From the sequence record MH221129.1: DNA of 64,000 nucleotides; one strand, 5' to 3'. A program made the position numbers and the translations under genes. Below are positions 6,163 through 56,022 of this stretch, piece by piece; positions within the stretch are counted from its first letter, which is position 1, and every line of letters starts with the position of its first letter. The notes under the pieces were generated by a model. That model had not been told where the DNA came from, did no database searches, and saw only the letters and a list, made by a program, of their open reading frames with translations.

Positions 6163-6705
6163 TCAGAACTTGCCTATGGCGATATTCTGCGTCGGCTCTA
6201 CCACGATGAGGATTTCTTTCAGGCGAGAACAGATATGTTCCCAGACCTGAACTTCCAGTTCACGGAAAGTCGTTTTCACTTCATACATGAACTGCGGCTT
6301 AAAGTCCTCACGTTTGAACGCCTCCCACGATTCGCTCAACGCTTTAGCATCTTCACCGCCCATGCGAATGATGTGCTCGATATTGTTGTTGGTGTCGTAC
6401 GCCTTATCAACTTTATCGATAGCTTCATCCACTTTCAGTTCAACCGTGAAGCGTCCCAGCTTGGCCTGGAGGAAGCCGTCTTGATTGTCTTCATCATTGT
6501 AGCTAAACTCTGCTACACGACGACTCAAGTCCATTGCTTCGTTGATGGCCAACTGAACGATAGAAGACGCAATGAGACCTGCGTGGTGTGGGTAGTCCAC
6601 CATTTTAGGCATCAGTAAGTCTTCAACCTTTCGTTTCAGTTTAAACATCGCTGCCGGGAACGCTTCACGAAACTCATCATCCAACAAGTCAATATAAATC
6701 TTCAT
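6163..6705 (-). CDS. Hypothetical protein (180 aa)
   Basis: Clean ORF, coupled to the upstream gene. Confidence 0.75.
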   Translation of the reverse strand: MKIYIDLLDDEFREAFPAAMFKLKRKVEDLLMPKMVDYPHHAGLIASSIVQLAINEAMDLSRRVAEFSYNDEDNQDGFLQAKLGRFTVELKVDEAIDKVDKAYDTNNNIEHIIRMGGEDAKALSESWEAFKREDFKPQFMYEVKTTFRELEVQVWEHICSRLKEILIVVEPTQNIAIGKF

Positions 6706-7241
6706 AATGCTTGCTTCCCGTATTTCTCACCGAGGTAAAGCAGCTCACGTCGACAGATACCCAACACATTCATTTCAGCCGAACGGTAGAGCTGAGTGAT
6801 TTTGTCGATGATGGACTGGTCAAGGATATCAGACCACGTAACCGTGTCAGTTACGTTGGCCGTACGGCCGTTAATGATAACCGCCACGTACGTTTCACCC
6901 AGGTTCTCTTGATGTAGCCCGGCCAATGATTCACCAACCTTATCAAACGCTTCGCTGAGCAAGTCAGTGATTTGGTCTGCACCTTCGACAAGTTCGAAAC
7001 GGTGTGGGTAGTTCAAGATATTGCGCAGCCGTGTGAACATGCGTTCAATCAGCTGGTTTACCATCGCATCAGTATCACTGATAGCCACATCTACACCGGA
7101 ACCCATCTCATCAGAAAGACGATTCTCATGAACGGCCAAAGCGTCATGGAGTTCGAACTCCACGTCTTTCTTTAGAGCCATGAGTATCTCGTCTAACTGA
7201 CGGCGTGACTCCGACATTGCGAAGTCAATTACGATTTGCAT
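6702..7241 (-). CDS. Hypothetical protein (start revised to MQIVIDF)
   Basis: AAGGGG RBS before ATG 7241 removes overlap with the upstream ORF. Confidence 0.7.
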   Translation of the reverse strand: MQIVIDFAMSESRRQLDEILMALKKDVEFELHDALAVHENRLSDEMGSGVDVAISDTDAMVNQLIERMFTRLRNILNYPHRFELVEGADQITDLLSEAFDKVGESLAGLHQENLGETYVAVIINGRTANVTDTVTWSDILDQSIIDKITQLYRSAEMNVLGICRRELLYLGEKYGKQAL

Positions 7242-41917: not shown

Positions 41918-41981
41918 AGGTAAACCGCCCTTCCTTTTGGGAGGGCGGTCTCCGTTTTATTACAGATTAGGAGTGTTTGCA

Positions 41982-44900
41982 ATGCCGAGAGAAGATGCGG
42001 CGCAGTTTAATGGTACACTAAGTACCCTTACTTACCCGAACAAATATTCGGCGGTGATTCCTGTAGAGGCACCGTTCTATCGTATCGGTTTAACTTTAAC
42101 CGTAACCGACCCAGCAACAAACACGAAACGTAAGTTGATTGAAGGTCTCGACTATTACCTGGGGCATTATTTTAAAGACCAGGCAGAAGCCGAGCAGGAT
42201 GCAATTTACGGCAGCATCATGTTGCTGAACGCAACCAATATTGAGTACGAACTGCTGGCTGTTGGCCGTCAGTATCGTATTCCGGCATCAGAAATCGGCA
42301 AGGCGTTGGTTAAGACCGACCTGAAAGACCCGCGTAACAGCGATTGGGCCGATTTGATGAAATACCCGCCTATCATCGCGCCTATCGATCCTCCGAAGGA
42401 TTTGGACGAAGCTATCCTGCGTGATGAAGTTGTTAAGGCATTGAATGATATCCGTCTGGGGATTATTGCTCGTGCAAGTGAACTGGACGAAGCGTTTACC
42501 GACGTTACTAACCTGATTTTCGAAAACGGGAAGAAGGTTTTTGACGATGAGATGTATCAGCACCACCTGAACATGAACGCGCACCATTACACTTGTGCTG
42601 ATATCCGCGCATTGCCGGTATTAGGTAAAGCCGTAGATGCGACGAAAGCGTTTGGCCGTACCCTGGCTGAGCTGGTTGACTTGATGTCGACGTCTGGCAT
42701 TCAACAAAAACACGTTGACATGTTGCTGGACAACACACTCGGTGATTTGCTGGGGCGTATGCGTGTGCTGAATAACGACGCTATTACGTTCCAGACAACC
42801 ACAGGTCACGTCATCAGTGTGAAGGGTGAGAAGTTCATCATCACTTCACCACAACCGATGTTTTTGAAAGCCGACCAGGATAATAACGATCCGGGGATTG
42901 CGACGGAGTTTAGTGCGGGGTTGAACACACTGTACGTCCACTCTGGGACAGCGGCTAACGTGAAAGCGCCGGTGTATAATGGGGTGTATCTGGTAACCCC
43001 GGATATGGTTGGGTTGTATTTAACCTCAGTAAAAATCCTGCCCGCAAACGCCTATTTTAAATCCAGCGATACGCTGAAGATTTATGGCTCGGGTAAGCAG
43101 ACCAACCGCGTGTACATGAACGCCGAGTTACCAGGCGCAACCACTACGGTAGAAGGGCTGTTTGCAATTACCAATCTGTCCACGTCCGTAGCAGCATCCA
43201 CCGCTATCTCGCAGAAAGCGGTAACCGACCTGAAAGAGTTACTGGATAACTACGTCGATGACACGTACACCATTAACGGTAAAGCGTTCATTAAAGACAG
43301 TAACGGTGAAATGCATCTGACGTTAACGGCTGCCGATTTTGGCGTTGACAAGATGAACAACACCACGCCGTTGGCTAAGCCGGTAACAAACGCACTGAAA
43401 ACGGTGCTGGCCGGGAAGGTGGCGTCTGACCACACCCACACCATTGCCGACTTGGACAACGTGCCGTATGCTTCGACGTCGACGACAGGTCTGGCGAAAC
43501 TGTGGGACGCAATCGACACAACCGCAGATAAGATGGTGACGTCGCGTCAGGGTTTCCTGCTTGACGAGCGCATCAACGAGATGAACGAGAAAATCAGCAC
43601 ACTGCTTCCTGCGTGGACGGTGGGTGGTGCCCAGTACGGGAACCAGAGTTTCTTGCCAATTCCAACCGTCAGTAACTTCGCTGGTTTCGGATTTAACCGT
43701 GCTAATCCGTGGGGTGCAGCACGCTATGAAGCGGGTAATGTCTACATGCTTCGTAACGGCTCTGACGGCCCGGAAGACACTCGGCGTGTTTATTACTGGT
43801 ACGGCAATGTCGACGCGAACAACAAGTTCACCAACACATACCCGACCGCGTTTCCTTATCATCCAGCTGGGATGTCGAAGTTCCCTGGTGTAACGCTGTT
43901 GCGGGTATTAACGGCCAGTGAAGACGTCGGCCTGTTTGAGGGCAGCGACGGGGCGAAGTATTTGGTATTGTTCAACGGTACCATGAACTACGCCAAACAT
44001 TCGGAAGTCTATAAAGTCACCTTCCCGGATCTCACCAGAACTACGGGTGGTGCGCTGACCTATGATTCAGTGATGTCTTTCATCACTGTGGCACTGGCGA
44101 AGACACACGTTGTCTTCATGATGACACACGTTACTAGCGATAGCTTTAAAGTGGGCGGGTGGTCTGTTGCGTTGAACGCATTAAAAGGGACAGACCCGAT
44201 TGCCTTCTCCGTGATACCTCTCAGTTACGCGAAAATGAACGGTGATGTTGCCCAAATTGTTGATGATGGCGCGCCTGAAAACGACAACACCGCAACTACT
44301 CGTTTAGCGTACGTGACCCAGGGTGCCCGTGATAAATGGACTCGAACCCGCACGCCGGTTAACTACCGCCCGTCGTTCTTTAGCGCGGCGAAACTGAATA
44401 ACGTTCGTGTGCGTTCTGAGATGCACTCGTATTTCGCGGACGATAAAAGCGCTTCGTGGTCGGATGCCTGGTCTGTCGTGTACAACGTGGATATCGACAC
44501 GGGTGTATTAACTGTTGAGAACCCACTCTTCCCAGTAGCCATCACCGAGAATAAAATCGAGTTCCCGAACGGAACGCGTTATAAGTCAGTCACTAACCGT
44601 AACATCGGTGTGGCAATTTACGCAAACTTGTTCGCTAACGCCGACTTCATGATTGACTCTTGGAGCGACGTTTACTCGAATAACCCGACGAACATCTCAA
44701 TCACACCGTTAGCAGGTACCGAGTTCTACGACCTGTTAGGAAGTGACACTACGTTGAACGAGTCCAGCAACGTACAGGTGATTGGGGCAGTAGGTTCGGT
44801 CTACAAGCAATACATGCGGGGAATTATCCATTTAGGTGGTGCAGAACGCACGATGTTGTTGCGCTATCTTGCGACCAGCACCTGCATTTCCATGCGTTAC

Positions 44901-47024
44901 GACTTGACCAATAAATACTTCCCTGATGCAGTTGGCTACGGCCCTGATAACTTGCGTGTCGCGCAGGACATCAGTACCTACAACGAGTTCGCTTTGACGC
45001 CGAATGTCTGGAAAGGCAACAAGCTGTACCTGAACGGGCGGGTGATTAATGCGGCGGGAAGTTATCCTTACAAGAATGTCGACGGTACAACCACTTTCAC
45101 CGCAGACCGGATTACCGTGTCTGACGCATTGTGGGCGAGCCTCGAAACCGCGATCGGTGCAGCACTCCCTCTGTGGAATGATGCTGAGACCATCGATAAG
45201 CAGTTCAACGTACACACCTTCGATATCGGAGGTCTGAACGCTGCGTTCTTGGTAGCGACCTGTCGTACCTGGGAAAACGCTGACCATATCCGCGCTTATT
45301 GCCGCACCACTGTCTGGAAAATTCCGATGACGGTGAATAGCGGTAATGTGTCGTTTGGTACAACGGGTTGGGTCGTGGCTGTGCCGGAATGGCGGGATGG
45401 TGAGGCAGCAATCTCACTGATGCGCGATCAAGTGGTGAACTCGAAGTTGGTTGCGCGAGACGACGGGTATGTCATTCAGTTGGGTGCTATATACCGCAGC
45501 GGTGTCGTTGGGGATTCACGTTGGCGTACGTACGTGATGACCTGCGATCAGTCGTTTGACAACTGGACAAACACCATGCGGGCGTTTAATCCGGGGATTG
45601 CTGAGGCTGATTTGTATATTCAGCCAGAAACGGGTTATATCGGCTACACCAAGTGGTTGTATCTGGGCCTGTACGTGGCTGCTGATATTTATCAGAACAC
45701 TTCTCGAACGTTCGCAACTGGAACACCGGTTGAAACGTATCTGGCGGGTGTAAAAACTGCGGAAGGCTGGAACCTGTACATCACCGAGGAAGAGTTGCTG
45801 TCGTTTGGCTCGTCACGTTATACCATCCCGACCTACGGTGTGGACATTCGTGACTTGTATCCAACGAACTACAAGAATCGGACGTTGTACATGCACGCGG
45901 TGCTTAACAACGGTAATCCGGAATACCAACTGCTGGAACAACAGATGCCCGATACGTCAACGCGACTGTACATCGGGTATATGACCAGTGACTCAGAGCG
46001 CATCACGTTCAGTAACTTTGATCGTGTGAAACGTCTGGGTGCAGTTAAACAGCTTCTTGAGCACGAATCTGTTGCCTATCGTCACGATATGGACGTGGGT
46101 CGTGACCAGAAACTGGGCAGACTGGGGCCGTTGTATAAGGAACCTATCGGGGCCATCGCTACGGACTCCTCTCACGGGTATCTCGACAGTCAACAGCTCT
46201 CGAGCGTGGTGGCGGGACAGAAGCGCACCAGAAAAGGCGTCAGCCAGGTGTTTAGCGGATTGTCGCAGGCTTTGATTACTACACAGTCGAATACTGCGTA
46301 CAAATACTGGAAGAAGCCAACGAACATCGTGTCGGTTACGGCGGATGAGAGTGCAGAAGGGGCCGCGTACGGAATGCAGTGGATAGGTGTCCCTCAACCG
46401 GCTGTTGTACCTGCAACAACCGACATGGGCATCCTCGTGCGTGGCAAGTACATTATCCCTGGCACGGTTGGTGATTCCACCGCGTTCGACGTTCGGGTTC
46501 TGCTTCCGTTTGGTTCTTCTGGTACGATCATTAATACCGAAGAGCCTGGGGTCGATGTCGACATGGACAACGATCCTAACGCTCTGGAGACGCCGGCAGA
46601 TGGCAGCGTTGTAACGTTACGACGTTACTCCCCCGCTGGGATTGCGTGTACGATTACGATTCTGGTGGCTATCCCGAAAGACCCGTTAACGGACTTTGGT
46701 CTGCGTGACGTTGCATGGCAAATCGTCGACCTCGGCGGTAATGTGGTGGCGCAAGGTGACGAGTCCAGCTATATCGGGATCGTGCCGTTGGGTACCGCAA
46801 CGCTGGGTACGCCTGTCGTGTTTAATGCTCGCACTTATACCTTTACGGACGTTGATGGTGCTATTCCGTTTGTGACAACTGGCGCAGAAGGGATCGCACC
46901 TGCACTGGTTTCCACTCCACTCGGAAACGGTGATACTGAAATCACGGTCGCTCATCACTTCATGAATGAACGTGGCGAACAAAAGCTTGACGAGGTGCAG
47001 GTCAATCTTATGTTCCGTACCTAA
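41982..47024 (+). CDS. Large tail fibre protein 3 (start revised to MPREDAA)
   Basis: AGGAG RBS; APFY...GLDY module, FGVDKMNNTTPLAKP repeat. Confidence 0.8.
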   Translation: MPREDAAQFNGTLSTLTYPNKYSAVIPVEAPFYRIGLTLTVTDPATNTKRKLIEGLDYYLGHYFKDQAEAEQDAIYGSIMLLNATNIEYELLAVGRQYRIPASEIGKALVKTDLKDPRNSDWADLMKYPPIIAPIDPPKDLDEAILRDEVVKALNDIRLGIIARASELDEAFTDVTNLIFENGKKVFDDEMYQHHLNMNAHHYTCADIRALPVLGKAVDATKAFGRTLAELVDLMSTSGIQQKHVDMLLDNTLGDLLGRMRVLNNDAITFQTTTGHVISVKGEKFIITSPQPMFLKADQDNNDPGIATEFSAGLNTLYVHSGTAANVKAPVYNGVYLVTPDMVGLYLTSVKILPANAYFKSSDTLKIYGSGKQTNRVYMNAELPGATTTVEGLFAITNLSTSVAASTAISQKAVTDLKELLDNYVDDTYTINGKAFIKDSNGEMHLTLTAADFGVDKMNNTTPLAKPVTNALKTVLAGKVASDHTHTIADLDNVPYASTSTTGLAKLWDAIDTTADKMVTSRQGFLLDERINEMNEKISTLLPAWTVGGAQYGNQSFLPIPTVSNFAGFGFNRANPWGAARYEAGNVYMLRNGSDGPEDTRRVYYWYGNVDANNKFTNTYPTAFPYHPAGMSKFPGVTLLRVLTASEDVGLFEGSDGAKYLVLFNGTMNYAKHSEVYKVTFPDLTRTTGGALTYDSVMSFITVALAKTHVVFMMTHVTSDSFKVGGWSVALNALKGTDPIAFSVIPLSYAKMNGDVAQIVDDGAPENDNTATTRLAYVTQGARDKWTRTRTPVNYRPSFFSAAKLNNVRVRSEMHSYFADDKSASWSDAWSVVYNVDIDTGVLTVENPLFPVAITENKIEFPNGTRYKSVTNRNIGVAIYANLFANADFMIDSWSDVYSNNPTNISITPLAGTEFYDLLGSDTTLNESSNVQVIGAVGSVYKQYMRGIIHLGGAERTMLLRYLATSTCISMRYDLTNKYFPDAVGYGPDNLRVAQDISTYNEFALTPNVWKGNKLYLNGRVINAAGSYPYKNVDGTTTFTADRITVSDALWASLETAIGAALPLWNDAETIDKQFNVHTFDIGGLNAAFLVATCRTWENADHIRAYCRTTVWKIPMTVNSGNVSFGTTGWVVAVPEWRDGEAAISLMRDQVVNSKLVARDDGYVIQLGAIYRSGVVGDSRWRTYVMTCDQSFDNWTNTMRAFNPGIAEADLYIQPETGYIGYTKWLYLGLYVAADIYQNTSRTFATGTPVETYLAGVKTAEGWNLYITEEELLSFGSSRYTIPTYGVDIRDLYPTNYKNRTLYMHAVLNNGNPEYQLLEQQMPDTSTRLYIGYMTSDSERITFSNFDRVKRLGAVKQLLEHESVAYRHDMDVGRDQKLGRLGPLYKEPIGAIATDSSHGYLDSQQLSSVVAGQKRTRKGVSQVFSGLSQALITTQSNTAYKYWKKPTNIVSVTADESAEGAAYGMQWIGVPQPAVVPATTDMGILVRGKYIIPGTVGDSTAFDVRVLLPFGSSGTIINTEEPGVDVDMDNDPNALETPADGSVVTLRRYSPAGIACTITILVAIPKDPLTDFGLRDVAWQIVDLGGNVVAQGDESSYIGIVPLGTATLGTPVVFNARTYTFTDVDGAIPFVTTGAEGIAPALVSTPLGNGDTEITVAHHFMNERGEQKLDEVQVNLMFRT

Positions 47025-47071
47025 CAGACAGCGCTATGGGGCATGGACGCCCCAATCAAAGGAGTTTGGCA

Positions 47072-48274
47072 ATGGCCGAAATCATTTATCAGTACCCGCT
47101 TGACCTTACCGGGACATTAACGTCGAACGCCGTTACGCGGCGCATTACGTTAGGTTCTGGTAAAGTTAACCGGGCATTTGCTTTTCCCGACGGGGCTTTC
47201 TACGCGGACACCTTTCGCTTAGCGGCTTCGAACAAACCAGGAGTCTATCCGTGGAAGCGCGGCACAGACTACGAACTGGTCTTTGCACATACCGCCTATC
47301 AGAAAATGACCAAGAACCGCGAAGTGGTCATGGGTGTGGTGGTAACGAACTCGGCCATTCCTACCGACATTGAATGCTTTGCACAAGTCGTCGGGGGTAT
47401 GCAGTCAGCAAACGTCGAGGGGATTCGTCAGGTCATCGCATCGCTGAAAATTGAAGACCGCGTCGTCGACTTCAAAGACCTGCGCAACGTGCCTGATACC
47501 TTCCCGTCAGCACCAACGTATAAAGACCTTGGTGACATCTACGGTTTTGAATACATCATTACCGTGTTGGCGGGCATTAAGGATGCCATCAACTCCGGCT
47601 CTGCAGTACAGCTGGAACAGATTAAAGGTATCCTGGACGGACTGAAGAACGACTTCATGTCTGCTCTGACTGCGCACATTAACGCCGAAGGTAACGTCCA
47701 CCATTTGGACATCCACCAGGCGAATGGTTTAACCGAAACCGAAATTCGTGCCCTTATTCAAAGCGTGCAGACTGCTATCGATGCTACGATTAAAGACATC
47801 GGTGATTTAAAAGCAGCAGATACCGCGTTAGGGCAACGTATTGATGCGATTGTTGCATCTTTGGCCGCGTGGAATGACCAGCTGAACGCTGTAGCTCAGA
47901 ACTACCAGAAAGCGATGTTGGCGTTAGCCAACCTCAATGACCTGGTGTTACAGCTGCAGAAAGCCGTCAATGATCTCCGTAACGAGTTGAATGAAACCAA
48001 CCAACGTGTGGACGATCTCGAGAGCCAGGGCAAAGACTTCCAACAGCAAATTGATAACCTGCAGACTCAGATTAACAATCTGAAAACCCAGGTCACCAAT
48101 AACACCAACGCGATTTCTCAGGCGAACCAAAACCTGGCAAACCACGTTGCTGCGGATAACCCGCATCCGAACTACCTGCACAAACAGTATGGTGGTGTGG
48201 TACAAGCAGCTGTCCACATCAACAACAACCTCACGACACGTGATGATGTTCAGGCGGAAGCCGGTACTAAGTAA
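47072..48274 (+). CDS. Short tail fibre-like protein with long coiled coil (start revised to MAEIIYQ)
   Basis: AAGGAG RBS; shared fibre N-module (GAFY...GTDY), heptad-rich coiled coil, HVAADNPH; ends without an obvious tip domain. Confidence 0.75.
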   Translation: MAEIIYQYPLDLTGTLTSNAVTRRITLGSGKVNRAFAFPDGAFYADTFRLAASNKPGVYPWKRGTDYELVFAHTAYQKMTKNREVVMGVVVTNSAIPTDIECFAQVVGGMQSANVEGIRQVIASLKIEDRVVDFKDLRNVPDTFPSAPTYKDLGDIYGFEYIITVLAGIKDAINSGSAVQLEQIKGILDGLKNDFMSALTAHINAEGNVHHLDIHQANGLTETEIRALIQSVQTAIDATIKDIGDLKAADTALGQRIDAIVASLAAWNDQLNAVAQNYQKAMLALANLNDLVLQLQKAVNDLRNELNETNQRVDDLESQGKDFQQQIDNLQTQINNLKTQVTNNTNAISQANQNLANHVAADNPHPNYLHKQYGGVVQAAVHINNNLTTRDDVQAEAGTK

Positions 48275-48281
48275 TTTATTT

Positions 48282-48330
48282 ACGAGCGGGGTCATGTTTA
48301 TGGAACATGACCCTCTCGTTCTTACTTTTT
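48282..48330 (+). terminator. Hairpin (possible leaky terminator/attenuator) ahead of the Cys-rich genes
   Basis: GGGTCATGTT-TATGG-AACATGACCC with outer ACGAG/CTCGT, followed by TCTTACTTTTT. Confidence 0.5.
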
Positions 48331-48341
48331 AAGGAAGCGTA

Positions 48342-48734
48342 ATGGCGATATCGATTAAAAACGTCCGTGACCGCTTGACCAACGTGGAAAACAATATGGC
48401 AACACAACCGCGTGTTGACCCACAAGTCGCGACGAAGGCGTATAACGCCGCAGACCGATTTGCAGGGTGGACGCCAGCGCAGCTGGATTGCGGGGGTACG
48501 TGCTCTTGGACGTGTTCCAACGGATGCTCACACGGGTGTTCGAGTTGTTCTGGTAGTTGCTCGGCCTCATGTATTGGTAGCTGTTCCTCTACATGCGGTG
48601 GTAACTGTTCCGGTTGTTCTGGTTGTTCCGGTGGCTGTAGTTCTAGCTGTACAGGTAACTGCTCAGGTGGGTGCGGTGGTTCTTGTTCATCGAACTGTTC
48701 AGGGGCTTGTTCGGGTGGCTGCTCTGGCCGATAG
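48342..48734 (+). CDS. CxxxC-repeat Cys/Ser/Gly-rich precursor peptide 1 (130 aa, 21 Cys)
   Basis: Cys-free N-region of 49 aa, then CGGTCSWTCSNGC...; AAGGAAG RBS. Confidence 0.85.
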   Translation: MAISIKNVRDRLTNVENNMATQPRVDPQVATKAYNAADRFAGWTPAQLDCGGTCSWTCSNGCSHGCSSCSGSCSASCIGSCSSTCGGNCSGCSGCSGGCSSSCTGNCSGGCGGSCSSNCSGACSGGCSGR

Positions 48735-48742
48735 GGGGAATA

Positions 48743-49144
48743 ATGGCAATCGGATTAAAAGCACTTAAATCTCGACTCGATGTAGTCGATGCTAATGCTT
48801 TAAAGAATACCACGAACGTGCAGAACTACATTCGTAACAAGGCAACGAATAACACTGATTTATTCGGCGGGCAACCGCGTGCGCATTACGACTGTGGCGG
48901 CACCTGTTCGTTTAGCTGCTCAAGCTGCTCCGGTGGATGTACCGGTTCTGCTTCGGGTGGCTGTGGCTCTACTTGTTCTGCAAACTGTGTCTCTGGTTGC
49001 TCCAGTAGTTGTACAGGTTGTAGTTCATCATGTTCGGGCGGTTGCTCCGGCAGCTGTACAGGTAACTGTTCAGGCGGCTGTGGTAAATCGTGCTCGGCAA
49101 ACTGTTCTGGTTCTTGCTCTGGCGGATGTTCTGGCCCGATGTAA
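48743..49144 (+). CDS. CxxxC-repeat precursor peptide 2 (133 aa, 20 Cys; start revised to MAIGLKA)
   Basis: GGGGGAA RBS; N-region homologous to peptide 1; core CGGTCSFSC... Confidence 0.85.
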   Translation: MAIGLKALKSRLDVVDANALKNTTNVQNYIRNKATNNTDLFGGQPRAHYDCGGTCSFSCSSCSGGCTGSASGGCGSTCSANCVSGCSSSCTGCSSSCSGGCSGSCTGNCSGGCGKSCSANCSGSCSGGCSGPM

Positions 49145-49156
49145 TGGAGGTTACCC

Positions 49157-49363
49157 GTGATAAGTCTCAAGAACGTTCGAGACCGCCTCGTCACTGCAGA
49201 GGGTTATCTCACCACCGCTCAAGCAAACAGCTACATCGCTAACCAGGGAACTGTGTCCACCACGAATAACCTGGCGTCTTTACCCTTGTCCCACTATAAC
49301 TGTAATGGTGGGTGTAGCTGGTCATGTAGCGGAAGCTGCAGCCGTGGCGCAGGAAATCGATAA
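49157..49363 (+). CDS. Short CxxxC precursor peptide 3 (68 aa, 4 Cys, GTG start)
   Basis: GGAGG RBS; ISLKNVRDRL is near-identical to the peptide 1 N-terminus; core CNGGCSWSCSGSC. Confidence 0.8.
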   Translation: MISLKNVRDRLVTAEGYLTTAQANSYIANQGTVSTTNNLASLPLSHYNCNGGCSWSCSGSCSRGAGNR

Positions 49364-49390: not shown

Positions 49391-50278
49391 ATGAAGAACG
49401 ATTTGCATCTTGCGTATAAAACCACGTTTAACCACCCACTGCATTTGTCATCACCCGACTCGGTTCGTGCACATCTTGCCGATCAGGTACGCTTGATTGC
49501 ACAGATTCCTGGCGAGTGGCCAAAGGTACGTGGACGTTTTCTTACCAATCCGGAAAACTATACCGTTGAAAATACGTTTAAGATCCGTGATATGGAAGCC
49601 CAAAGCATTGTTATCTTCAACGGCGATGGTAACTCTCGTGGGGTGTTGGTTGGCGGGAAGTATTTCTTCAGTGAAGGGATTTTGAATAACAGTGTGGACT
49701 TAGAATTAATGTTCACACCGTTTGATGAACTGGAAGCGAAACCGATGGCACGCCGTTGGTGGAGTCCGGATTATCTCGGTTCTTTCCCGTACTACTTTGT
49801 GCTGGTTCCAGTAGAAACTGAAACCTACTTTGATACCGAGCCGTATATCGATATCGAAGGCTACAAAGAGTTAGGCATCACCTGTCTCGCGGATATGATG
49901 GCGTATAGCTATAAGTTCGTCTGGGACAAACGTCGTTCGGTCTGGTACGCACTGACTGATGAGTTTGAAATCACTAAACGTATCCGCAAACCGTGGATGC
50001 AGCATTTAGTGCAGACCCGTCACGGTGATTATCCAGCAACCGAAGCCGACTTAAGTAAGCTGGTCAGTTTCTTACTGACGAAAGTTGACCTTACCGACGA
50101 AGAAGCGGAAGCGGTCTCTGAGTTCCGTTCCCGTGCTGTAACGTTGGCCGACTTAAAACGTCTGAACGAACGCCAGTACGACCTGAACAAAATCCTGGCC
50201 GCCTATCACTCGCCAATGCTGCTTGTGCCGGGGGCTAATGTAAACGAAGATCCTTTATTCGCTATTGACTATATTTAA
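49391..50278 (+). CDS. Unknown protein in the radical SAM/Cys-peptide cluster (295 aa)
   Basis: GGAG RBS; aromatic-rich, helical C-terminus; no recognisable motif. Confidence 0.75.
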   Translation: MKNDLHLAYKTTFNHPLHLSSPDSVRAHLADQVRLIAQIPGEWPKVRGRFLTNPENYTVENTFKIRDMEAQSIVIFNGDGNSRGVLVGGKYFFSEGILNNSVDLELMFTPFDELEAKPMARRWWSPDYLGSFPYYFVLVPVETETYFDTEPYIDIEGYKELGITCLADMMAYSYKFVWDKRRSVWYALTDEFEITKRIRKPWMQHLVQTRHGDYPATEADLSKLVSFLLTKVDLTDEEAEAVSEFRSRAVTLADLKRLNERQYDLNKILAAYHSPMLLVPGANVNEDPLFAIDYI

Positions 50279-50299: not shown

Positions 50300-51217
50300 A
50301 TGACAGACAAAGTAGAATCCAGGATCTCGTCTGAACTGTATGACAAACCGTCAATCCTGTCGGTTGTCACAACGTCTAAGTGTAACTTAGACTGTAGCTT
50401 CTGTGGAGGAGCCTATTACATGGATCGCGAGGACACTTCTCGTGAATTTCAACGCAGCCAGATTATGGAACAGCTTGAGCTGAACCCTGGCATTCAGGAG
50501 ATTCACTGGACGGGCGGTGAGCCGTTACTGGCACAGCGTAAAATTGAAGATTTCTTCTTCGAGCTTAAAGAATCACACCCGCACCTCAAACATCAGATGT
50601 ACACCAACGGTTTAAAGATGCGTAAGTCGCATCTGCCGATGCTGAAACAGTTCGACGTCATTTTCGTGTCTATCGACGGCTACACCAAGTCGGAACGTCC
50701 GTTTATGAACTTCATTAACGGCGGTAACCACGAAGCGTTGGAAACGCTGTATGAGCTGGACAACTATTACAGTTGGGGTGTCATGACCCGCGACCAGCTT
50801 GGTGACAAGCGTTGGTACGAAGACTTCATCGAGTTGCACCGTGCGCTGTATCACTACCGTCCAGGTGGTGTGTCGTTGCTGTTCGATGCGATGATGCCTA
50901 AACCGCTCTCGCCAGACCACGTCATGAACTTCATGTACGGATACTGGAAGATTCTGGATAATATCGAACGTCTGAATATGCAGAATGACACGGAATGTGG
51001 CTTGGCTATCAGCAAAATGTTTGATACCGAGTGTAACATCTGTAGCGAAGTGCTGTGGTTAAATGCCGATGGTGCCATCGAGCAAAACCAAAACGCTCCA
51101 GAGATTGTGAGTGTGGGCTGTAACCGACTGGCACGTTCCATCGGGGTTGAAGCTTACAATTACATCAACCGTGTTATTTCTGCTAAACGTATTCGGGCGG
51201 CTAAAAATGAGCAATGA
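50300..51217 (+). CDS. Radical SAM enzyme 1 (305 aa, short Cys-containing C-terminal extension)
   Basis: CNLDCSFC (CX3CX2C), WTGGEPLL, MYTNG, VSIDG; C-terminal CNIC...GC. Confidence 0.92.
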   Translation: MTDKVESRISSELYDKPSILSVVTTSKCNLDCSFCGGAYYMDREDTSREFQRSQIMEQLELNPGIQEIHWTGGEPLLAQRKIEDFFFELKESHPHLKHQMYTNGLKMRKSHLPMLKQFDVIFVSIDGYTKSERPFMNFINGGNHEALETLYELDNYYSWGVMTRDQLGDKRWYEDFIELHRALYHYRPGGVSLLFDAMMPKPLSPDHVMNFMYGYWKILDNIERLNMQNDTECGLAISKMFDTECNICSEVLWLNADGAIEQNQNAPEIVSVGCNRLARSIGVEAYNYINRVISAKRIRAAKNEQ

Positions 51218-52535
51218 CCAACCCATCCAGTATACCCCTCGCACTTATCAGGTCGTAACTAACCTGTCGTGCAACCTCGACTGCGAATATTGCTACGAGC
51301 GTAAATACCCGCGTAACAACAAAGCTGCTGACGTCATCGACTTTATCCACGCCTGTTTTGAGCGTGATAAAGATATCGAAAACGTAGAAGTCATCATCGA
51401 TATCATCGGTGGTGAGCCGTTCATGCAGCCGAAGTTGCTGATTGCTGCTTTTGAAACCGCAGAAGAGTTGTGCAAAATTCACAGCCGTCCGTACATGTTC
51501 AGTATTTCCACGAACGGTACGCTGCTCGATCGCCCACTGAACCGTGAGATTATCGACCGCTGGAAAGACAAGCTGTCTATCGGTGTGTCTATCGATGGTC
51601 TGCCGGAAGTACACGACAAATACCGTATCTTTACAACTACCCGTGAAGGGTCGTATGAAGCTGCGGTGAAAGGGTACAACTACCTGAAAGAAGTCGGTAT
51701 CGCAGAACTGGGCGTTAAAGCAACCTTCACCATCGACACATTGCCGCATTACGGCGCGAGCATGAAGTCGCTGATTGACATGGCGGGCGGTGGTACTATC
51801 TCCGGTAACGTAACGTACGAAGACATTCTGCCTCGTTCGATGGCGTTGGATATCGCTGCGCAGATGATGGACGTGATGGACTACTGGGTGGAAAAAGGTT
51901 TACACACCAACCCGCGTAACATCATCACCCACATCATTCCCGATGGCCTGGACTTCATGCAAATCTGGGACCCTGACTGGCGTGATAAACTGCTGCACGA
52001 CGACACGGTACGTCTGAACCCAGACCGCCTGCGTCCTTACTGCGGTACGCTGACGCACATGACTTGCTTAGGTTTCGACCGTAAGATTTATGGTTGTAAC
52101 CGATTCATGTCGACAGTTACTACACGTTCTGCTGTTGCGGAGCTGGTTGGCCGTGAGTTCGTTAGCCTGGATGGCGGTGCGCTGCTGGAAGAAATTCAGA
52201 CTCAGTACACCAACTACCCGGAAACCTGCCTGGGTTGCCCAATGAAACACAGCTGCGGTAGCTGCGCCGCTGCGTCTTACGAGAACGGCGAAGGGACACT
52301 GGAAGACCGTAAAGCATACCACGCTGAGCGTCGCCAGTGTGGTTGGACCACCGCTAAGCTGATGGCTGCGGAATACTGGTTCCAGAAAATGGGCAGCACC
52401 AAAGGTTCTGACTTCCATGACAAGTCAGTCTGCTATTGTGCACGTTGTGTGCGCCAACGCAAAGAAGCGAATATAAAACAACTATCCGGAGTTCAGAATG
52501 AAGTCGATACTGATTCACAATTTTACGAAGCGTAA
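51207..52535 (+). CDS. Radical SAM/SPASM peptide maturase (442 aa; start revised to MSNDQP)
   Basis: CNLDCEYC, IIGGEPF, ISTNGT, VSIDG; SPASM-like YCG..TC.GFD.KIYGC and CLGCPMKHSCGSC...C; extra CYCARC near the C-terminus. Confidence 0.92.
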   Translation: MSNDQPIQYTPRTYQVVTNLSCNLDCEYCYERKYPRNNKAADVIDFIHACFERDKDIENVEVIIDIIGGEPFMQPKLLIAAFETAEELCKIHSRPYMFSISTNGTLLDRPLNREIIDRWKDKLSIGVSIDGLPEVHDKYRIFTTTREGSYEAAVKGYNYLKEVGIAELGVKATFTIDTLPHYGASMKSLIDMAGGGTISGNVTYEDILPRSMALDIAAQMMDVMDYWVEKGLHTNPRNIITHIIPDGLDFMQIWDPDWRDKLLHDDTVRLNPDRLRPYCGTLTHMTCLGFDRKIYGCNRFMSTVTTRSAVAELVGREFVSLDGGALLEEIQTQYTNYPETCLGCPMKHSCGSCAAASYENGEGTLEDRKAYHAERRQCGWTTAKLMAAEYWFQKMGSTKGSDFHDKSVCYCARCVRQRKEANIKQLSGVQNEVDTDSQFYEA

Positions 52536-53064
52536 ACTACATCTGGTAGATCGTTTCTTGCGTAAGAAGAAACTCTACAACGTTCACGCTATCGTGTCCG
52601 GTGAAGACTTCACGGACGAGATTCAGGGCTTGCTGGTGAAGTACGGCCTGAATGTTATTATCCCTGTTACGTGTGTTGAACAGGGCCACGAATCGGTAGC
52701 GGAAATCGAGAAGCGTAACCCAGGTTTCGAAGCGCGTGTGTTGGCGTACCCTCGCCACAAAATCGAACTGCTTCGTCACTCGGGTTTGGAGCCTAGCCCG
52801 GAGAGTATTATTGCTCTCGGCCTGTCTTTCCCGCGCTTGCGCATTCGCAACCTGCGTAACACTACGCCGGTAGATGCCTACTACACTGAGCGTCAGATGT
52901 TTGAAGAATTCCTTTTCCCGCAGCTGGAAGAGGAAGAACAACATCAGATTTCGGTGCTGTGGGGCGGCGACCTCGATCAGAGCTTCTCATTGCTGGACTT
53001 CGGTTTGCTATTTGAACTTGACCTGATTGAGGAGGACGAATGTCTGCTTCTGACAAAAGCCTGA
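52498..53064 (+). CDS. Unknown protein in the radical SAM cluster (188 aa)
   Basis: Overlaps the rSAM2 3' end (38 nt) and the next gene (25 nt), consistent with coupling. Confidence 0.7.
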   Translation: MKSILIHNFTKRKLHLVDRFLRKKKLYNVHAIVSGEDFTDEIQGLLVKYGLNVIIPVTCVEQGHESVAEIEKRNPGFEARVLAYPRHKIELLRHSGLEPSPESIIALGLSFPRLRIRNLRNTTPVDAYYTERQMFEEFLFPQLEEEEQHQISVLWGGDLDQSFSLLDFGLLFELDLIEEDECLLLTKA

Positions 53065-53711
53065 CGAAAGATGAAATTCGCGCTCGTTATTTTGAGCGCG
53101 ATTTACCTATCGACCGGCACGGTAACTACATGGAGCGTATCGGGGCACAAGACCAGGGTCGTACCGGGTTCTGTGCGCTGTTGCATTACCATTTGATCGA
53201 AGGTATGTCCGACAAAGACGCACTGGCCAAGATGAAACTGTACGAAATGTCAGCCATCGAAGCCAACTTCACACTGAAACGTGCAAAAGAGTTCATTTCC
53301 GATGTTCTGGAAATCGACCTGGACGACATTCGTAAGAACATGAAGTCCACCGCACGTTACATCTACGAAGATGTGCAGAAGATGCTGCAGGAGTTAGACC
53401 ACCGCTACGAAGACCAACGTCACGGATTCATCGAGTTCGAAGGGTGTCATTTCCAGGCGGATGAAAACTCCCGTTCTATCCTCGGGCAATACATCCAGGC
53501 GAACCATGCTCCGGAATACTGGCTTGACACCACCAATACACGCATTGAGCCGTTTAGCGTGGAACAGTGTCAGGCGCTGTTAGCTGCCATTGTACAGCGT
53601 GACCAGGAACTCCACGCGACGATGTCAGACGCGAAGAAACAGATTCGTGTACTGGCAGAAGCGCGGGACTTCACCGGCCTGAAAGCGTTGCAAGAACAGC
53701 TTGGCATGTAA
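53040..53711 (+). CDS. DUF4376-like tail fibre assembly chaperone with N-terminal extra domain
   Basis: C-half FEGCHFQADENSR...WLDTTN...LLAAIVQR...KKQI fits the DUF4376 pattern. Confidence 0.7.
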   Translation: MSASDKSLTKDEIRARYFERDLPIDRHGNYMERIGAQDQGRTGFCALLHYHLIEGMSDKDALAKMKLYEMSAIEANFTLKRAKEFISDVLEIDLDDIRKNMKSTARYIYEDVQKMLQELDHRYEDQRHGFIEFEGCHFQADENSRSILGQYIQANHAPEYWLDTTNTRIEPFSVEQCQALLAAIVQRDQELHATMSDAKKQIRVLAEARDFTGLKALQEQLGM

Positions 53712-53725
53712 ATAAAAAAGAAAGT

Positions 53726-53749
53726 CCTCTCTACCCTAGGGTAGAGAGG
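53726..53749. terminator. Bidirectional terminator closing the fibre/rSAM operon
   Basis: CCTCTCTACCC-TA-GGGTAGAGAGG flanked by A- and T-runs. Confidence 0.85.
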
Positions 53750-53758
53750 TGCTTTTAT

Positions 53759-54268
53759 TTAATTGAACCCATCGAGGTCGCCGTACTTGGTCTGCAGATT
53801 ATCCTTACCATCGTAAACACGGTACACCATTGCGCCCGTCCACTTTAGATGCTCAGAATCAATCTTAACTTTGAATTCCGTCCAATCTTTCCCATCGTTC
53901 CCCGAACCCATCACCGTCAAAGTGATTTCGTCCAGGGTAAGTTTATGATCAGGTAAGAACTGATTAAAGTTGTACAAAACAAATTTGGGATCTGACCAGT
54001 AAGCTACCACATCGCCCATCGCTACGGTATAAACGTCTTCACCGTTCGGATGGGTGAAATCAAATCTTCGATAGTGGTATTCTTTACTTCCTGCGAATGG
54101 ACTGGCCGACTTTGCCGTCAACGTGAGCGCGGTATTACGCACATCGCCTTCCGTAGACGAAGCGTGTTTTGCCGGGCTACTGAAATCTACATCAGCCAAC
54201 GTCAGACCCAACCCTGGGTTCTTGGCATTCACTAAATCAATGATTTCTTCTTGCAAAGTCTTAGCCAT
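53759..54268 (-). CDS. Tail-associated paralog family A (GxLDGF C-terminus)
   Basis: LVNAKNPGL...FAG..YxR...GDLDGFN; GGAG RBS before ATG 54268. Confidence 0.75.
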   Translation of the reverse strand: MAKTLQEEIIDLVNAKNPGLGLTLADVDFSSPAKHASSTEGDVRNTALTLTAKSASPFAGSKEYHYRRFDFTHPNGEDVYTVAMGDVVAYWSDPKFVLYNFNQFLPDHKLTLDEITLTVMGSGNDGKDWTEFKVKIDSEHLKWTGAMVYRVYDGKDNLQTKYGDLDGFN

Positions 54269-54285
54269 CTGCAATCTCCAGGGGG

Positions 54286-54801
54286 TTAGTTAAAACCGTC
54301 CAATTCGCCATCAAGGCGACCGAGGTCTCTGACTTTTGGTGTTATCGTGTAGGTGAACCCCAGATGTCCGTTATCTGGCGGTAAGAACTTAATGCTGTTG
54401 GCGATGGAAACCATTACCACCAGGCGTCCATCTTCTGTCTCACTCCGACCGATGGTGAGTTCTTGCGCAGTAAATGCGTCGTCCGGCCAGGTTTGCTGTA
54501 GCCGCGCATTCATTTGGTCGAGCACGTAAGCGTCGTCATCCCAACGTTCCGGATTGCTTGAGTTCCAGGCGTCGTCGGTAATTCCCGATGGAACACGGTT
54601 ATAGTAGATAGTCATCGACCCAGCGAAATAGAGCGATTCTTCTTTCGCTGTGAGATACGACATCGTATTCCATTTGTTGGGATCTGGACTACCCATCATC
54701 GGGTTGTCGTAAATCTCGATATCATCTAAAGTTGCCGGATGGGGTAAATTGGGATTGGCTGCATTATACAGCGCGAGGAGTTGCTCTTTTGAAGATGCCA
54801 T
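54286..54801 (-). CDS. Tail-associated paralog family A
   Basis: LYNAANPNL...FAG..YNR...GELDGFN. Confidence 0.75.
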   Translation of the reverse strand: MASSKEQLLALYNAANPNLPHPATLDDIEIYDNPMMGSPDPNKWNTMSYLTAKEESLYFAGSMTIYYNRVPSGITDDAWNSSNPERWDDDAYVLDQMNARLQQTWPDDAFTAQELTIGRSETEDGRLVVMVSIANSIKFLPPDNGHLGFTYTITPKVRDLGRLDGELDGFN

Positions 54802-54890
54802 GATGGGCTCCTTGTGTTGCGAAAAGAAAGTCCATGTGGTTCGCCATCTAAGCGTGGTGATACCCGTGCAGGTGAATTATTTTAGAGTAA

Positions 54891-55430
54891 TTAGTTAGGG
54901 ACACCAAAGCCGTCTAACTCGCCGTTCGTCGTGGAAAGATCAGTTTTCACAACAGCTTCATAGATCGAGTAGACGATAACCGCATCTTCAAATTTCATGT
55001 GGTTACGAATAGTGATGGTGATATCCAACGTTTGTGCGTTCTCACCTTCAGCACGACTAATGGAGAAACTTCCGTTCTCACCGCTGTCGTCTGGCCCCAG
55101 TTCATCAATAGGGTACTGACGTTGTAAGTCGGCGTTCAGCTGGGTGAGAACTGCACTGTCTTCAGCCCAATCGCTGTGATTACCGTCGATGGTTTCACCT
55201 GTGAAACCAACAGGTAAACGACGATACACGAGCGAGATATCGCCAGTGAAATACTGACTTTCTGCTTTGGCTGAGATGTTCAGAATAAAATTAGCAAGAC
55301 TCTCACCTTCGGGAGTCTTGCTACTGCGTGAACCCGCAGAGAAGTCATTAACCGTTAATGGGTGTGGTAGGGTAGGGTTAGCCGCGTTGTACAAATCACA
55401 CAGTTGCTGTTTGGTCGAAATCGTTGCCAT
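54891..55430 (-). CDS. Tail-associated paralog family A
   Basis: LYNAANPTL...FTG..YRR...GELDGFGVPN. Confidence 0.75.
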   Translation of the reverse strand: MATISTKQQLCDLYNAANPTLPHPLTVNDFSAGSRSSKTPEGESLANFILNISAKAESQYFTGDISLVYRRLPVGFTGETIDGNHSDWAEDSAVLTQLNADLQRQYPIDELGPDDSGENGSFSISRAEGENAQTLDITITIRNHMKFEDAVIVYSIYEAVVKTDLSTTNGELDGFGVPN

Positions 55431-55462
55431 GGTTACTCCTTAGTGGCAATTAAAAAATAAAA

Positions 55463-55480
55463 GAGGGGCCGTAGCCCCTC
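55463..55480 (-). terminator. Intrinsic terminator with cUACGg loop
   Basis: GAGGGGC-TACG-GCCCCTC then TTTTATTTTTT. Confidence 0.8.
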
Positions 55481-55488
55481 TGGCTTAT

Positions 55489-56022
55489 TTAGTTAGGAAC
55501 GCCGAAACCGTCCAGTTCACCGTTAGTGGTGCTCAGGTCAGTCTTCACGATCTCCTGGGTGATGGTGTAGACCGCAATAGTGCCTTCCTGGTATTTGATG
55601 TGACCATCTTTTACCAGTACGGTAATCACTTTCGCACCGTCCTGACCATCAGTACGTTCGAAAGTCAGTTCACTGACCGCGAAAGCATCATCGGGGCGAC
55701 CTTTGGCTTGCAAGTCGGTGTTAACAAAAGCCAGCACTTCTTCGTCGGTGTCCCAGTCCGCCTGATCGGCAGTAACGGCTTTGTTACCGATGAGGTTAGC
55801 AGAAGCCATGCGGGTGTAGTGTAATTCTTTCTCGCCGGTGAAATACTGAGACCCACCGACTGCGGTGATCGTGAGTTTGGTATTACGGCCATCGACCGGG
55901 TCAGCAACATAGTCACTTGCCGTGCCGAAGGTAACATCCGCAGAGGTTAACGCTTGCGCCAGACCGGAGTTTTTGGTGTTGAACAAAGCAACGAGTTGAT
56001 CTTGAAATGAAACAATAGCCAT
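55489..56022 (-). CDS. Tail-associated paralog family A
   Basis: LFNTKNSGL...FTG..YTR...GELDGFGVPN. Confidence 0.75.
   Translation of the reverse strand: MAIVSFQDQLVALFNTKNSGLAQALTSADVTFGTASDYVADPVDGRNTKLTITAVGGSQYFTGEKELHYTRMASANLIGNKAVTADQADWDTDEEVLAFVNTDLQAKGRPDDAFAVSELTFERTDGQDGAKVITVLVKDGHIKYQEGTIAVYTITQEIVKTDLSTTNGELDGFGVPN

Follow-up and report, generated by a model that had tools for sequence, protein, structure and literature searches.

Three cysteine-rich genes in a tail-gene block

The stretch of DNA considered here, which we call the window, is 64,000 nucleotides of sequence record MH221129.1 and belongs to an SPN3US-like jumbo phage (Salmonella). Within it, two terminator-like hairpins enclose an operon of tightly packed or overlapping genes, positioned in a late structural block of baseplate and tail-fibre genes. 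The operon opens with three genes for cysteine-rich peptides, P1, P2 and P3, and continues into two radical-SAM (rSAM) enzymes and their companions:

41937..47024, + strand: 1695-aa baseplate/tail-fibre candidate, SPN3US gp168 orthologue by synteny with SPN3US_0168
47036..48274, + strand: 412-aa virion structural protein, gp167 orthologue, coiled-coil C-terminal half (phrog_2163 at 4e-105)
48288..48314, + strand: terminator-like hairpin between gp167 and P1, 12-pair stem followed by a T-rich tail
48342..48734, + strand: P1, 130 aa, a 49-aa N-region and a Cys-repeat core, 21 Cys
48743..49144, + strand: P2, 133 aa, 20 Cys, Ala at one expected Cys position
49157..49363, + strand: P3, 68 aa, GTG start, 4 Cys, conserved G-A-G-N-R end
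49391..50278, + strand: 295-aa partner (phrog_8030), co-occurring with the rSAM in jumbo phages and in loci L051-L056
50300..51217, + strand: small radical-SAM enzyme, 305 aa (Pfam Radical_SAM at 1e-14)
51207..52535, + strand: radical-SAM/SPASM enzyme, 442 aa, divergent relative of CXXX-repeat maturases
52498..53064, + strand: 188-aa protein (phrog_7988), jumbo-phage clade only
53040..53711, + strand: DUF4376 protein, 223 aa, last gene of the operon (Pfam DUF4376 at 2.6e-10; phrog_8169)
53726..53749, both strands: bidirectional terminator-like hairpin closing the operon, 10-pair stem with T-rich tails on both strands

The company that this operon keeps is largely that of virion proteins. In SPN3US, gp168 is a tail protein by virion mass spectrometry (PMC5105663; PMC5694885), gp167 was detected in the virion without a head-protein flag, and the flanking gp167-170 are tail virion proteins (PMC5694885). 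The virion lacks the enzymes gp162-165, which is consistent with a maturase role, and gp161-166 are unlisted in the published proteome (PMC5105663; PMC5694885). What, then, of the peptides themselves? In JN641803, the reference of the SPN3US proteome work, P1-P3 are unannotated or mis-framed (the SPN3US_0166 annotation overlies the P2 gene out of frame), and for this reason the proteome searches could not have detected them. The fault is systematic: GenBank records miss genes of the P1-P3 type or call the wrong frame or strand.

P1, P2 and P3 are real, conserved and paralogous genes under strong purifying selection. A Shine-Dalgarno-like site precedes each; the pEa_SNUABM_29 orthologue of P3 begins with ATG at the very position of the GTG of P3; and the N-regions of the three align pairwise with z = 6.6-8.7, a score reached by none of 2000 shuffles. 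Across the Cys core of P1, the window and SPN3US differ by 45 synonymous and 4 non-synonymous substitutions (pS 0.76, pN 0.022), and for P3 the same comparison gives a pN of 0.07 in the N-region and 0 in the core. The initial annotation had proposed gene duplication with selection at the protein level, and the N-region alignment and the substitution counts bear it out on both; the N-termini, junction and Cys runs that it described were all confirmed, coordinates included. Elsewhere in the six frames of the window, only one other run of at least four spaced Cys occurs, four Cys long and within a 41-aa ORF. One might worry that these reading frames are artefacts of low-complexity DNA, since the other frames, and the opposite strand as well, also contain long ORFs, some of which are what the GenBank records annotate instead. 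The excess of synonymous change in the claimed frame already refutes this idea, and the ribosome-binding sites are conserved, the Cys counts are kept across 16 phages and the PHROG family of P1, phrog_6085, is matched at about 1e-42 to 6e-42; we regard an artefact as next to impossible.

P1 and P2 also share a 17-nt identity that had been pointed out at the start. It is exact (48645-48661 = 49052-49068), but it does not stand as anything beyond shared residues: 5% of synonymous resamplings of P2 share a run of at least 17 nt with P1 (mean 12.6), so that the identity reflects the shared residues only, and recent gene conversion, which one might have read from it, is rejected on the same count.

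The triad and the operon behind it (295-aa protein, small rSAM, rSAM/SPASM enzyme, 188-aa protein and DUF4376 protein) are found again in 16 distinct relatives, which span at least four genera. The 295-aa protein has 93 representative clusters among 1.8 billion proteins and a confident AF2 model (pLDDT 87.5); it has no Pfam, NCBIfam or PDB sequence match, its fold matches nothing in PDB or BFVD besides its own orthologue, and no profile links it to the ~100-aa accessory protein of the other module type. The 188-aa protein, modelled as an alpha/beta fold (pLDDT 87.4), carries an invariant Cys and a near-invariant His, and the fold is not protease-like. Among its fold matches the one of highest probability, to the rSAM core of SkfB (6efn), is weak (TM 0.54, probability 0.97, E 3.2e-2, rank 50 by E-value), and profile-profile comparison with both rSAM families found no link; we accordingly assign the protein to no family. 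As for the structural neighbours, the 412-aa gp167 orthologue is a possible docking partner for the peptides.

Cysteine cores and a shared junction

Each peptide falls into three parts: an N-region of about 50 residues, a junction and a run of units with the consensus C-[ST]-G-x. As in the CXXX-repeat system discussed below, cysteines recur in tandem at a spacing of 4, occasionally 3, over 21, 20 and 4 Cys in P1, P2 and P3. The gaps in P1 run 4,4,4,4,3,4,4,4,4,4,3,3,4 and onward, while P2 has a single gap of 8 with Ala where a Cys is expected. These are the CxxxC runs with occasional CxxC, the Cys-to-Ala position of P2 and the halt of P3 after four Cys that had been noticed at first sight of the sequence. 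The P2 Ala is kept in Seoulvirus, Erskinevirus and Machinavirus, with Cys instead in the CR5-like clade; P1 has exactly 21 Cys in 16 of 16 distinct related jumbo-phage loci. Acidic residues are missing altogether from the cores of the three peptides, and across the jumbo clade Asp and Glu lie outside the 12 commonest core residues, each below 0.2%.

The junction lies at nearly the same residues in all three peptides, as the initial annotation had placed it (about residues 47-58):

48480..48515, + strand: P1 junction motif, aa 47-58
48884..48919, + strand: P2 junction motif, aa 48-59
49292..49327, + strand: P3 junction motif, aa 46-57

Its consensus is aromatic-x-C-[GN]-G-x-C-S-[WF]-x-C. Loss of the junction in homologues had been named beforehand as one thing that would refute the reading, and homologues keep it: in an alignment of 21 sequences (A1), C50, G52 and C54 are invariant and S55, C58, S59, C62 and S63 nearly so; in one other phage, L016, the P2 carries Ala in place of G52. 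The junction may be a site that the enzymes recognise, as was first proposed, or else an element of the fold, and P3 might be the minimal substrate, cap or regulator that the initial annotation took it for. In the CR5/Derbicus-like clade, P3 retains the first two junction Cys alone (C-x-G-x-C-S-W), which argues, as far as conservation can tell us, that the junction and not the Cys run is the essential part of P3. Searched alone, the N-regions matched only their own PHROG family. The junction pattern found no relative in 185,579 species-representative genomes, and this form is therefore unseen in the prophages of sequenced species.

Radical-SAM enzymes and their known relatives

The closest known kind of system is the CXXX-repeat radical-SAM target system, which consists of a TIGR04114/TIGR04117 peptide (Pfam PF27846), a TIGR04115 rSAM/SPASM maturase, TIGR04119 and TIGR04116; it has been defined bioinformatically, and our literature search found no experimental paper on it. 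TIGR04114 is the sole NCBIfam match of each peptide, at 18.9 bits for P1, 15.1 for P2 and 13.6 for P3, all under the cut-off of 20. Among NCBIfam families, the large rSAM scores highest with TIGR04115 (121.8 bits; cut-off 350) and next with PapB (108.5 bits; cut-off 340), and the QhpD enzyme family is also among its matches (55 bits). Because its score lies so far below the cut-off, yet it aligns over its full length with canonical TIGR04115 members (24% identity) and keeps all three rSAM and seven SPASM Cys invariant in that alignment, we call the large enzyme a divergent relative of TIGR04115 and not an equivalog. In the small rSAM, CxxxCxxC and GGEP are invariant (alignment A6); this enzyme is fused to the large rSAM in locus L056 and relocated between P1 and P2 in L014/L015.

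The likeness to the CXXX system is thus one of tandem repeats with Cys at every fourth position and small spacers, lying beside a homologous rSAM/SPASM enzyme that retains its cluster-ligand Cys. The differences are several. Both peptide and enzyme score under the curated cut-offs, and neither TIGR04116 nor TIGR04119 is matched by the 295-, 305- or 188-aa proteins, whereas both are present in the bacterial locus L011. The phage has instead a second true rSAM, the 295-aa protein and the 188-aa protein, and its three paralogous substrates, with their fibre-like N-region and aromatic junction, sit in the tail-fibre block of a lytic phage. Unlike the bacterial CXXX example, the phage locus has no Tat signal and no dedicated TatA/TatC.

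How tightly do such repeats and such enzymes travel together? A relative of this large rSAM is encoded on 314 viral contigs of IMG/VR, and all 62 of the 62 non-jumbo loci examined have a Cys-repeat ORF next to the rSAM, on the same strand and mostly within ~2 kb. The same pairing is seen in full-length bacterial relatives; in a control, those genome loci that lack a Cys-repeat ORF proved to be mostly partial matches to the rSAM core alone. The link to the adjacent rSAMs that had first been suggested is supported both by this adjacency and by the best NCBIfam matches, which are those of a CXXX target and its maturase, and P1-P3 are, to judge from these sequence relations, probably cross-linked by the two adjoining radical-SAM enzymes.

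A different thought is that the Cys runs bind metal or Fe-S clusters, or form disulfides, and that the rSAMs act elsewhere, on the large fibre proteins or a small molecule. A Cys content of ~27% with small spacer residues does recall metal-binding peptides, and one bacterial relative has a Tat system of its own for export; Tat systems carry folded or cofactor-bearing proteins. The unbroken pairing of repeat and enzyme in viruses and bacteria speaks against it, and so does the poverty in Cys of the adjoining fibre proteins (6 Cys for the 1695-aa protein, a single one for the 412-aa protein), as does the fact that the characterised near relatives of the enzyme all act on peptides that contain Cys. 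We consider this alternative quite unlikely.

Those characterised relatives suggest what the chemistry might be. PapB, the SCIFF maturase and QhpD are related SPASM enzymes that form Cys thioethers (PMC10114670; PMC9413430), and PapB joins Cys to Asp or Glu (PMC9413430). Like PapB/freyrasin, ranthipeptide and SCIFF maturases, whose family ranks second for the phage enzyme, the phage system has short Cys-containing units, each of which might be expected to be stapled. Unlike PapB targets, the phage cores hold no Asp or Glu, so that the Cys-X3-Asp/Glu acceptor motif is missing and the PapB type of Cys-to-Asp chemistry is excluded for them; the PapB score is far below its cut-off, and the genes are structural ones rather than a natural-product cluster. 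QhpD puts multiple Cys thioethers into a small protein that is later a subunit of a larger assembly (PMC10114670). By analogy, QhpD and its substrate QhpC (the quinohemoprotein amine dehydrogenase gamma subunit) would resemble the phage case in pairing an rSAM/SPASM enzyme with a small protein destined for assembly; the substrate sequence differs, there is no repeat array, and the setting of QhpC is a periplasmic enzyme and not a virion.

Cysteine-tipped fibres and a proposed role

In other phages, the Cys-repeat module is the tip of genuine tail fibres. Locus L054 carries it on a fibre that matches Pfam Phage_tail_fib at 1.8e-40; the proteins of L053 and L056 match tail-fibre PHROGs and have the Cys repeat as a C-terminal tip; and P0008 has a tail-fibre-like N-terminus followed by a whole N-region, junction and core as its C-terminal part. 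L050 encodes a 568-aa protein with repeated fibre-like motifs and no tail-fibre family match, which ends in the same junction motif and a Cys repeat. Fusion or homology to recognised tail-fibre proteins was thus found via L054, L053, L056, L050 and P0008, and the junction motif of P1-P3 is common to L050, L051 and P0008. These uncultured phages share with the window the Cys-repeat module, the 295-aa partner (in the fibre-tip loci L051-L056) and paired or fused rSAMs; the module there is fused to a long fibre, whereas the window has three separate small proteins. Outside the jumbo clade, the tail-fibre context is direct for ~7 loci, several upstream genes being without annotation. A Firmicute prophage (L007) has the order tape measure, tail proteins, collagen fibre, Cxxx protein, TIGR04115 rSAM (389 bits, over the cut-off of 350) and holin; its Cxxx protein, in a tblastn search of GenBank phages with the low-complexity filter on, gave no match. 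A full-text literature search found nothing on this Cys-repeat/rSAM phage module or on such fibre tips.

These fibres change how one reads the N-region, which the initial annotation had called a 'leader'. If the peptides were classical RiPPs, the N-region would guide the rSAMs and then be removed, and the core would be a free bioactive peptide released at lysis, for instance to act on competitors or to serve as a signal. The genes do have the small size of precursor genes, with a bipartite layout of leader and core and rSAM/SPASM maturases adjoining; the nearest enzyme families are RiPP maturases, and P2 and some relatives have a Gly-Gly-like pair ahead of the junction. Yet the same N-region and junction are internal to the tail-fibre-like P0008, and in the longer fibre-like proteins L050 and L051 the junction and its flank form the boundary between shaft and tip. 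Within the genus, moreover, conservation is stronger in the core than in the N-region (pN 0.02-0.06 vs 0.12-0.18). The operon itself, placed as it is in the late structural block, has no leader peptidase or exporter detectable with Pfam, PHROGs or NCBIfam, no immunity gene that we could detect and, by Pfam and NCBIfam, no RRE (PqqD-like) in any of its proteins; the core of the large rSAM begins at about residue 22, with no N-terminal extension able to hold one. We therefore hold a cleaved and released peptide to be unlikely. Because several of the Cys-repeat ORFs elsewhere are tail fibres and three carry the same junction, the supposed leader looks, from its sequence, like a fibre shaft or docking segment. 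The 295-aa protein, its fold unassigned, could conceivably be a recognition protein of a new type. Separately, inspection by eye of the N-region for prohead-protease or double-glycine cleavage found motifs that misfit or that recur inside long fibres, and we set such cleavage aside.

We lean, then, with modest confidence, toward reading P1-P3 as rSAM-modified parts of the baseplate and tail-fibre apparatus of an SPN3US-like jumbo phage and not as secreted peptide antibiotics. The N-region, whose homologue in the fibre-like proteins of other phages lies just ahead of the Cys tip, would dock or oligomerise rather than be discarded. The Cys run would be modified post-translationally by the co-transcribed rSAM/SPASM enzyme, with the small rSAM and the 295-aa partner assisting; most likely, thioether cross-links would form along the run and stiffen it into a covalently stapled rod, and the matured peptides would then serve the fibre apparatus as components or caps. 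Action of the rSAMs on P1-P3, thioether chemistry and entry of the products into the virion we infer from sequence and gene context. Counting against this structural reading are the sub-cut-off NCBIfam scores of peptides and enzyme alike, the missing TIGR04116 and TIGR04119 companions, the lack of acidic acceptors in the cores, the small number of loci (~7) with a direct tail-fibre context outside the jumbo clade, and the short size and bipartite layout, which fit a RiPP too.

Might the modified peptides instead work outside the virion, as fibre scaffolds, chaperones or other assembly factors and regulators, with P3 a competitor or regulator of the maturases? P3 is strongly conserved despite having 4 Cys, or 2 in the CR5-like clade, and the operon ends with the DUF4376 protein, which has a weaker match to a 'tail protein' PHROG. 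Elsewhere, however, the Cys repeat is covalently part of the phage fibre, and a role of this kind seems to us improbable.

In its widest form, which we offer tentatively and as rather less than an even chance, the proposal of fibre parts shaped by rSAM enzymes is that rSAM cross-links in Cys-repeat tail-fibre tips may be an unrecognised modification of virion structural proteins, present in phages by the hundred and as far apart as Gram-positive siphophage prophages and enterobacterial jumbo phages, and that in the SPN3US clade the module would have been split off as three separate mini-fibre proteins with a machine of two rSAMs to serve them. If this is true, two conserved rSAM genes of a well-used jumbo-phage model, one for which amber genetics exist, would be explained, and the orphan CXXX-repeat family would gain its first biological role. 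Radical chemistry of the RiPP type would then build virus particles, beyond the peptide natural products, and a chemically stapled fibre tip would have a bearing on how these phages bind their receptors and on how robust their virions are.

Three paralogous genes and their conservation

The three small Cys-repeat peptides, P1 to P3, each consisting of an N-region of about 50 residues, a junction (aromatic-x-C-[GN]-G-x-C-S-[WF]-x-C) and a Cys core, belong to one operon, each of the three genes with a Shine-Dalgarno-like site 5' of it and the operon flanked on both sides by terminator-like hairpins:

48288-48314, terminator-like hairpin
48342-48734, plus strand, P1, 130 aa
48743-49144, plus strand, P2, 133 aa
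49157-49363, plus strand, P3, 68 aa, GTG start
53726-53749, terminator-like hairpin

There follow, without gaps, genes for a 295-aa protein, a 305-aa radical-SAM enzyme (the small rSAM), a 442-aa radical-SAM/SPASM enzyme (the large rSAM), a 188-aa protein and a DUF4376 protein. The Salmonella jumbo phages STsAS and SPAsTU carry this region with 100% identity; identity with SPN3US (genus Seoulvirus) is about 80%. On its 5' side lie orthologues of SPN3US gp168 and gp167, tail-associated virion proteins by mass spectrometry (PMC5105663, PMC5694885). At 53759-56022, on the minus strand, are four tandem paralogues of 171-179 aa ending in G-E/D-L-D-G-F, the first 34% identical to gp160, one of the most abundant SPN3US head proteins (PMC5694885, Supplementary Table 1).

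The N-termini, junction motif, Cys spacing, single Ala at an expected Cys of P2 and four Cys of P3 described in the initial annotation were all correct on re-examination, and the kinship it proposed for the three N-regions was borne out (z = 6.6-8.7; none of 2000 shuffles attained the observed score). No other Cys run comparable to those of P1 and P2 occurs in the window, in any frame. The 17-nt identity between P1 and P2 is exact but of no special significance; since a run of 17 nt arises in 5% of synonymous resamplings, it adds nothing beyond common amino acids.

Selection at the protein level, also proposed earlier, is evident in the P1 core, which differs from that of SPN3US by 45 synonymous and 4 non-synonymous changes (pS 0.76, pN 0.022); on these counts the reading frame of P1-P3 is, by sequence comparison, certain. 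The additional open reading frames that overlap P1-P3 out of frame or in antisense arise simply from the codon composition. Between the same phages the N-regions have pN of 0.07-0.18; in the Cys cores (48489-48722 and 48893-49129) synonymous sites have reached or passed saturation (pS 0.76-0.81), with the protein nearly unchanged. Public records tell a different story: SPN3US_0166 (6503-6838 of the SPN3US locus, L001) is an out-of-frame ORF across P2, with P1 and P3 unannotated, and in pEa_SNUABM_29 (L002) two antisense CDSs (3142-3354 and 3589-3861) are annotated across P1 and P2. Because GenBank and RefSeq miss or miscall these genes, proteomic searches based on those annotations cannot detect the peptides, and the published SPN3US searches rested on annotations without P1-P3.

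The same gene block is present in Seoulvirus, Erskinevirus (phiEaH2), Machinavirus (pEa_SNUABM_43) and Derbicusvirus (CR5), and an IMG/VR motif scan gave 18 loci on contigs of 107-248 kb (17 above 150 kb), comprising 16 distinct peptide sets. The Cys count of P1 is exactly 21 in every set; that of P2 ranges from 20 to 23. P3 takes two forms, one with four Cys and a C-terminal G-A-G-N-R, the other with the first two junction Cys only (C-x-G-x-C-S-W); these two-Cys variants show the junction, judged by sequence, to be the indispensable part of P3. Its conservation among homologues, the point on which the earlier reading was open to refutation, held: C50, G52 and C54 are invariant in a 21-sequence alignment and S55, C58, S59, C62 and S63 nearly so; outside that alignment, P2 of one phage has Ala for G52. 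Among cultured phages the large rSAM occurs in 63 records, 62 of them from the enterobacterial jumbo-phage clade. In two IMG/VR jumbo-phage contigs (L014, 8406-9326, and L015) the small rSAM gene stands between P1 and P2, not after the 295-aa gene.

A known family and the phage machinery

A CXXX-repeat family of rSAM targets already exists in curated databases. Its peptide model, TIGR04114, is the sole NCBIfam match of each peptide, at 18.9, 15.1 and 13.6 bits for P1, P2 and P3 (below the cut-off of 20), and its maturase model, TIGR04115, is the top match of the large rSAM, at 121.8 bits (below the cut-off of 350); next in rank come PapB, geopeptide, HxsB and other peptide maturases. Two canonical TIGR04115 members can be aligned with the large rSAM from end to end, at 24% identity, and CxxxCxxC and seven SPASM Cys are invariant. 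A literature search, with few subscription journals covered, found no experimental or descriptive paper on the family and nothing tying it to phages or tail fibres.

A bacterial reference locus (L011) encodes a Tat-signal Cxxx peptide, TIGR04115, TIGR04119, TIGR04116, TatA and TatC. In the phage operon TIGR04116, TIGR04119 and Tat are absent; in their place are a second genuine rSAM and two proteins that could not be assigned to a family. The twin-arginine signal and dedicated TatA/TatC genes of L011 (2996-7107), found also in L012 and L013, imply that the modified peptide is exported folded or cross-linked.

The 295-aa protein gives a confident predicted model (pLDDT 87.5) with no fold relative in PDB or BFVD except its own orthologue, and a search of 1.8 billion proteins yielded only 93 representative clusters for it. 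In the 188-aa protein (52498-53064), which is confined to the jumbo-phage clade, the stretch E-K-R-N-P-G-x-E-x-R and a C-terminal Cys are invariant and a His is nearly so. The predicted alpha/beta fold of this protein (pLDDT 87.4) weakly resembles a radical-SAM core without the cluster motif; the highest-probability match, a weak one, is to the rSAM core of SkfB, and sequence comparison gave no support for the link.

Cys repeats and radical-SAM enzymes in other viruses

Used as a protein query, P1 gave few matches, two kinds of which were informative. One, a 210-aa protein (P0008), has a tail-fibre-like N-terminus followed by the whole N-region, junction and Cys core. The others, of about 200 aa, join an N-domain to a Cxxx repeat; one, in a Firmicute prophage, is flanked by a collagen-repeat fibre and a bona fide TIGR04115 rSAM, with the holin following closely. 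An IMG/VR scan with an rSAM alignment found a relative encoded on 314 viral contigs, and the pairing is obligate: outside the jumbo clade a same-strand Cys-repeat ORF was present in all 62 loci examined, in most cases no more than about 2 kb from the rSAM. As a control, bacterial loci without such an ORF mostly matched the generic rSAM core alone.

Several of these viral Cys-repeat proteins are, by their domain matches, true tail fibres. That of L054 has the Pfam phage tail-collar fibre N-terminal domain (1.8e-40), those of L053 and L056 match tail-fibre PHROGs strongly, and tail-fibre or fibre-assembly genes lie upstream in L053, L056, L081 and L099. In L050 the protein is 568 aa long, repeats fibre-like motifs, matches no tail-fibre family and ends in aromatic-x-C-G-G-x-C-S-W-x-C plus a Cys run. 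The modules fall into two types: jumbo phages and L050-L056 have the 295-aa family and usually two rSAMs, and the second type has an accessory protein of about 100 aa and one TIGR04115 rSAM. On the 284-kb contig of L056 (6137-8194) small rSAM and rSAM/SPASM are fused into one 686-aa protein, and the fibre tip has 12 Cys.

Very large Cys-repeat ORFs also adjoin relatives of the large rSAM, with 112-122 Cys in stop-to-stop ORFs of about 670 codons in Candidatus Termititenax/Margulisiibacteriota (L112, 3384-5399; L113, 3078-5081; L114, 3647-5647) and 92 Cys in 488 codons on a viral contig (L060, 4756-6195). The usual layout is reversed, with the Cys repeat N-terminal and a non-Cys domain C-terminal, in proteins downstream of the rSAM in the viral loci L057 (3748-4431), L061 (8221-9078), L075 and L106.

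Proposed chemistry, the N-region and a possible role in fibres

What might the enzymes do to these peptides? We infer that the rSAM/SPASM enzyme would modify the Cys run of P1-P3. By analogy, the likeliest chemistry is thioether cross-linking, since all of the characterised relatives (PapB, SCIFF maturases and QhpD) make Cys thioethers (PMC10114670; PMC9413430), QhpD doing so in a protein subunit and not a free peptide (PMC10114670). The constant part of the core unit is C-[ST]-G, and the putative acceptor cannot be Asp or Glu, which the cores do not contain.

The initial annotation, confirmed in its observation, is supported in its interpretation only in part: the N-region as a classical leader is disfavoured by several observations. 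Pfam, PHROGs and NCBIfam detected no RRE, protease or exporter in the operon; the large rSAM is not extended at its N-terminus; P0008 carries the N-region internally, and L050 and L051 have the junction where shaft meets tip; and within the genus the N-region evolves faster than the Cys core. The N-region may contribute to enzyme recognition, and the junction could act in recognition, nucleate the fold, or do both.

We favour a structural role for P1-P3, as fibre parts or caps, because the same module forms the C-terminal tip of real fibres, because the operon sits in a tail-fibre block, and because the operon enzymes are absent from SPN3US virions and the flanking gp167-170 are present (PMC5694885). 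What is new here is the phage tail-fibre context of CXXX-repeat targets, their separation into three free-standing paralogues that have a conserved junction in common, and a machinery of two rSAMs and the 295-aa protein.
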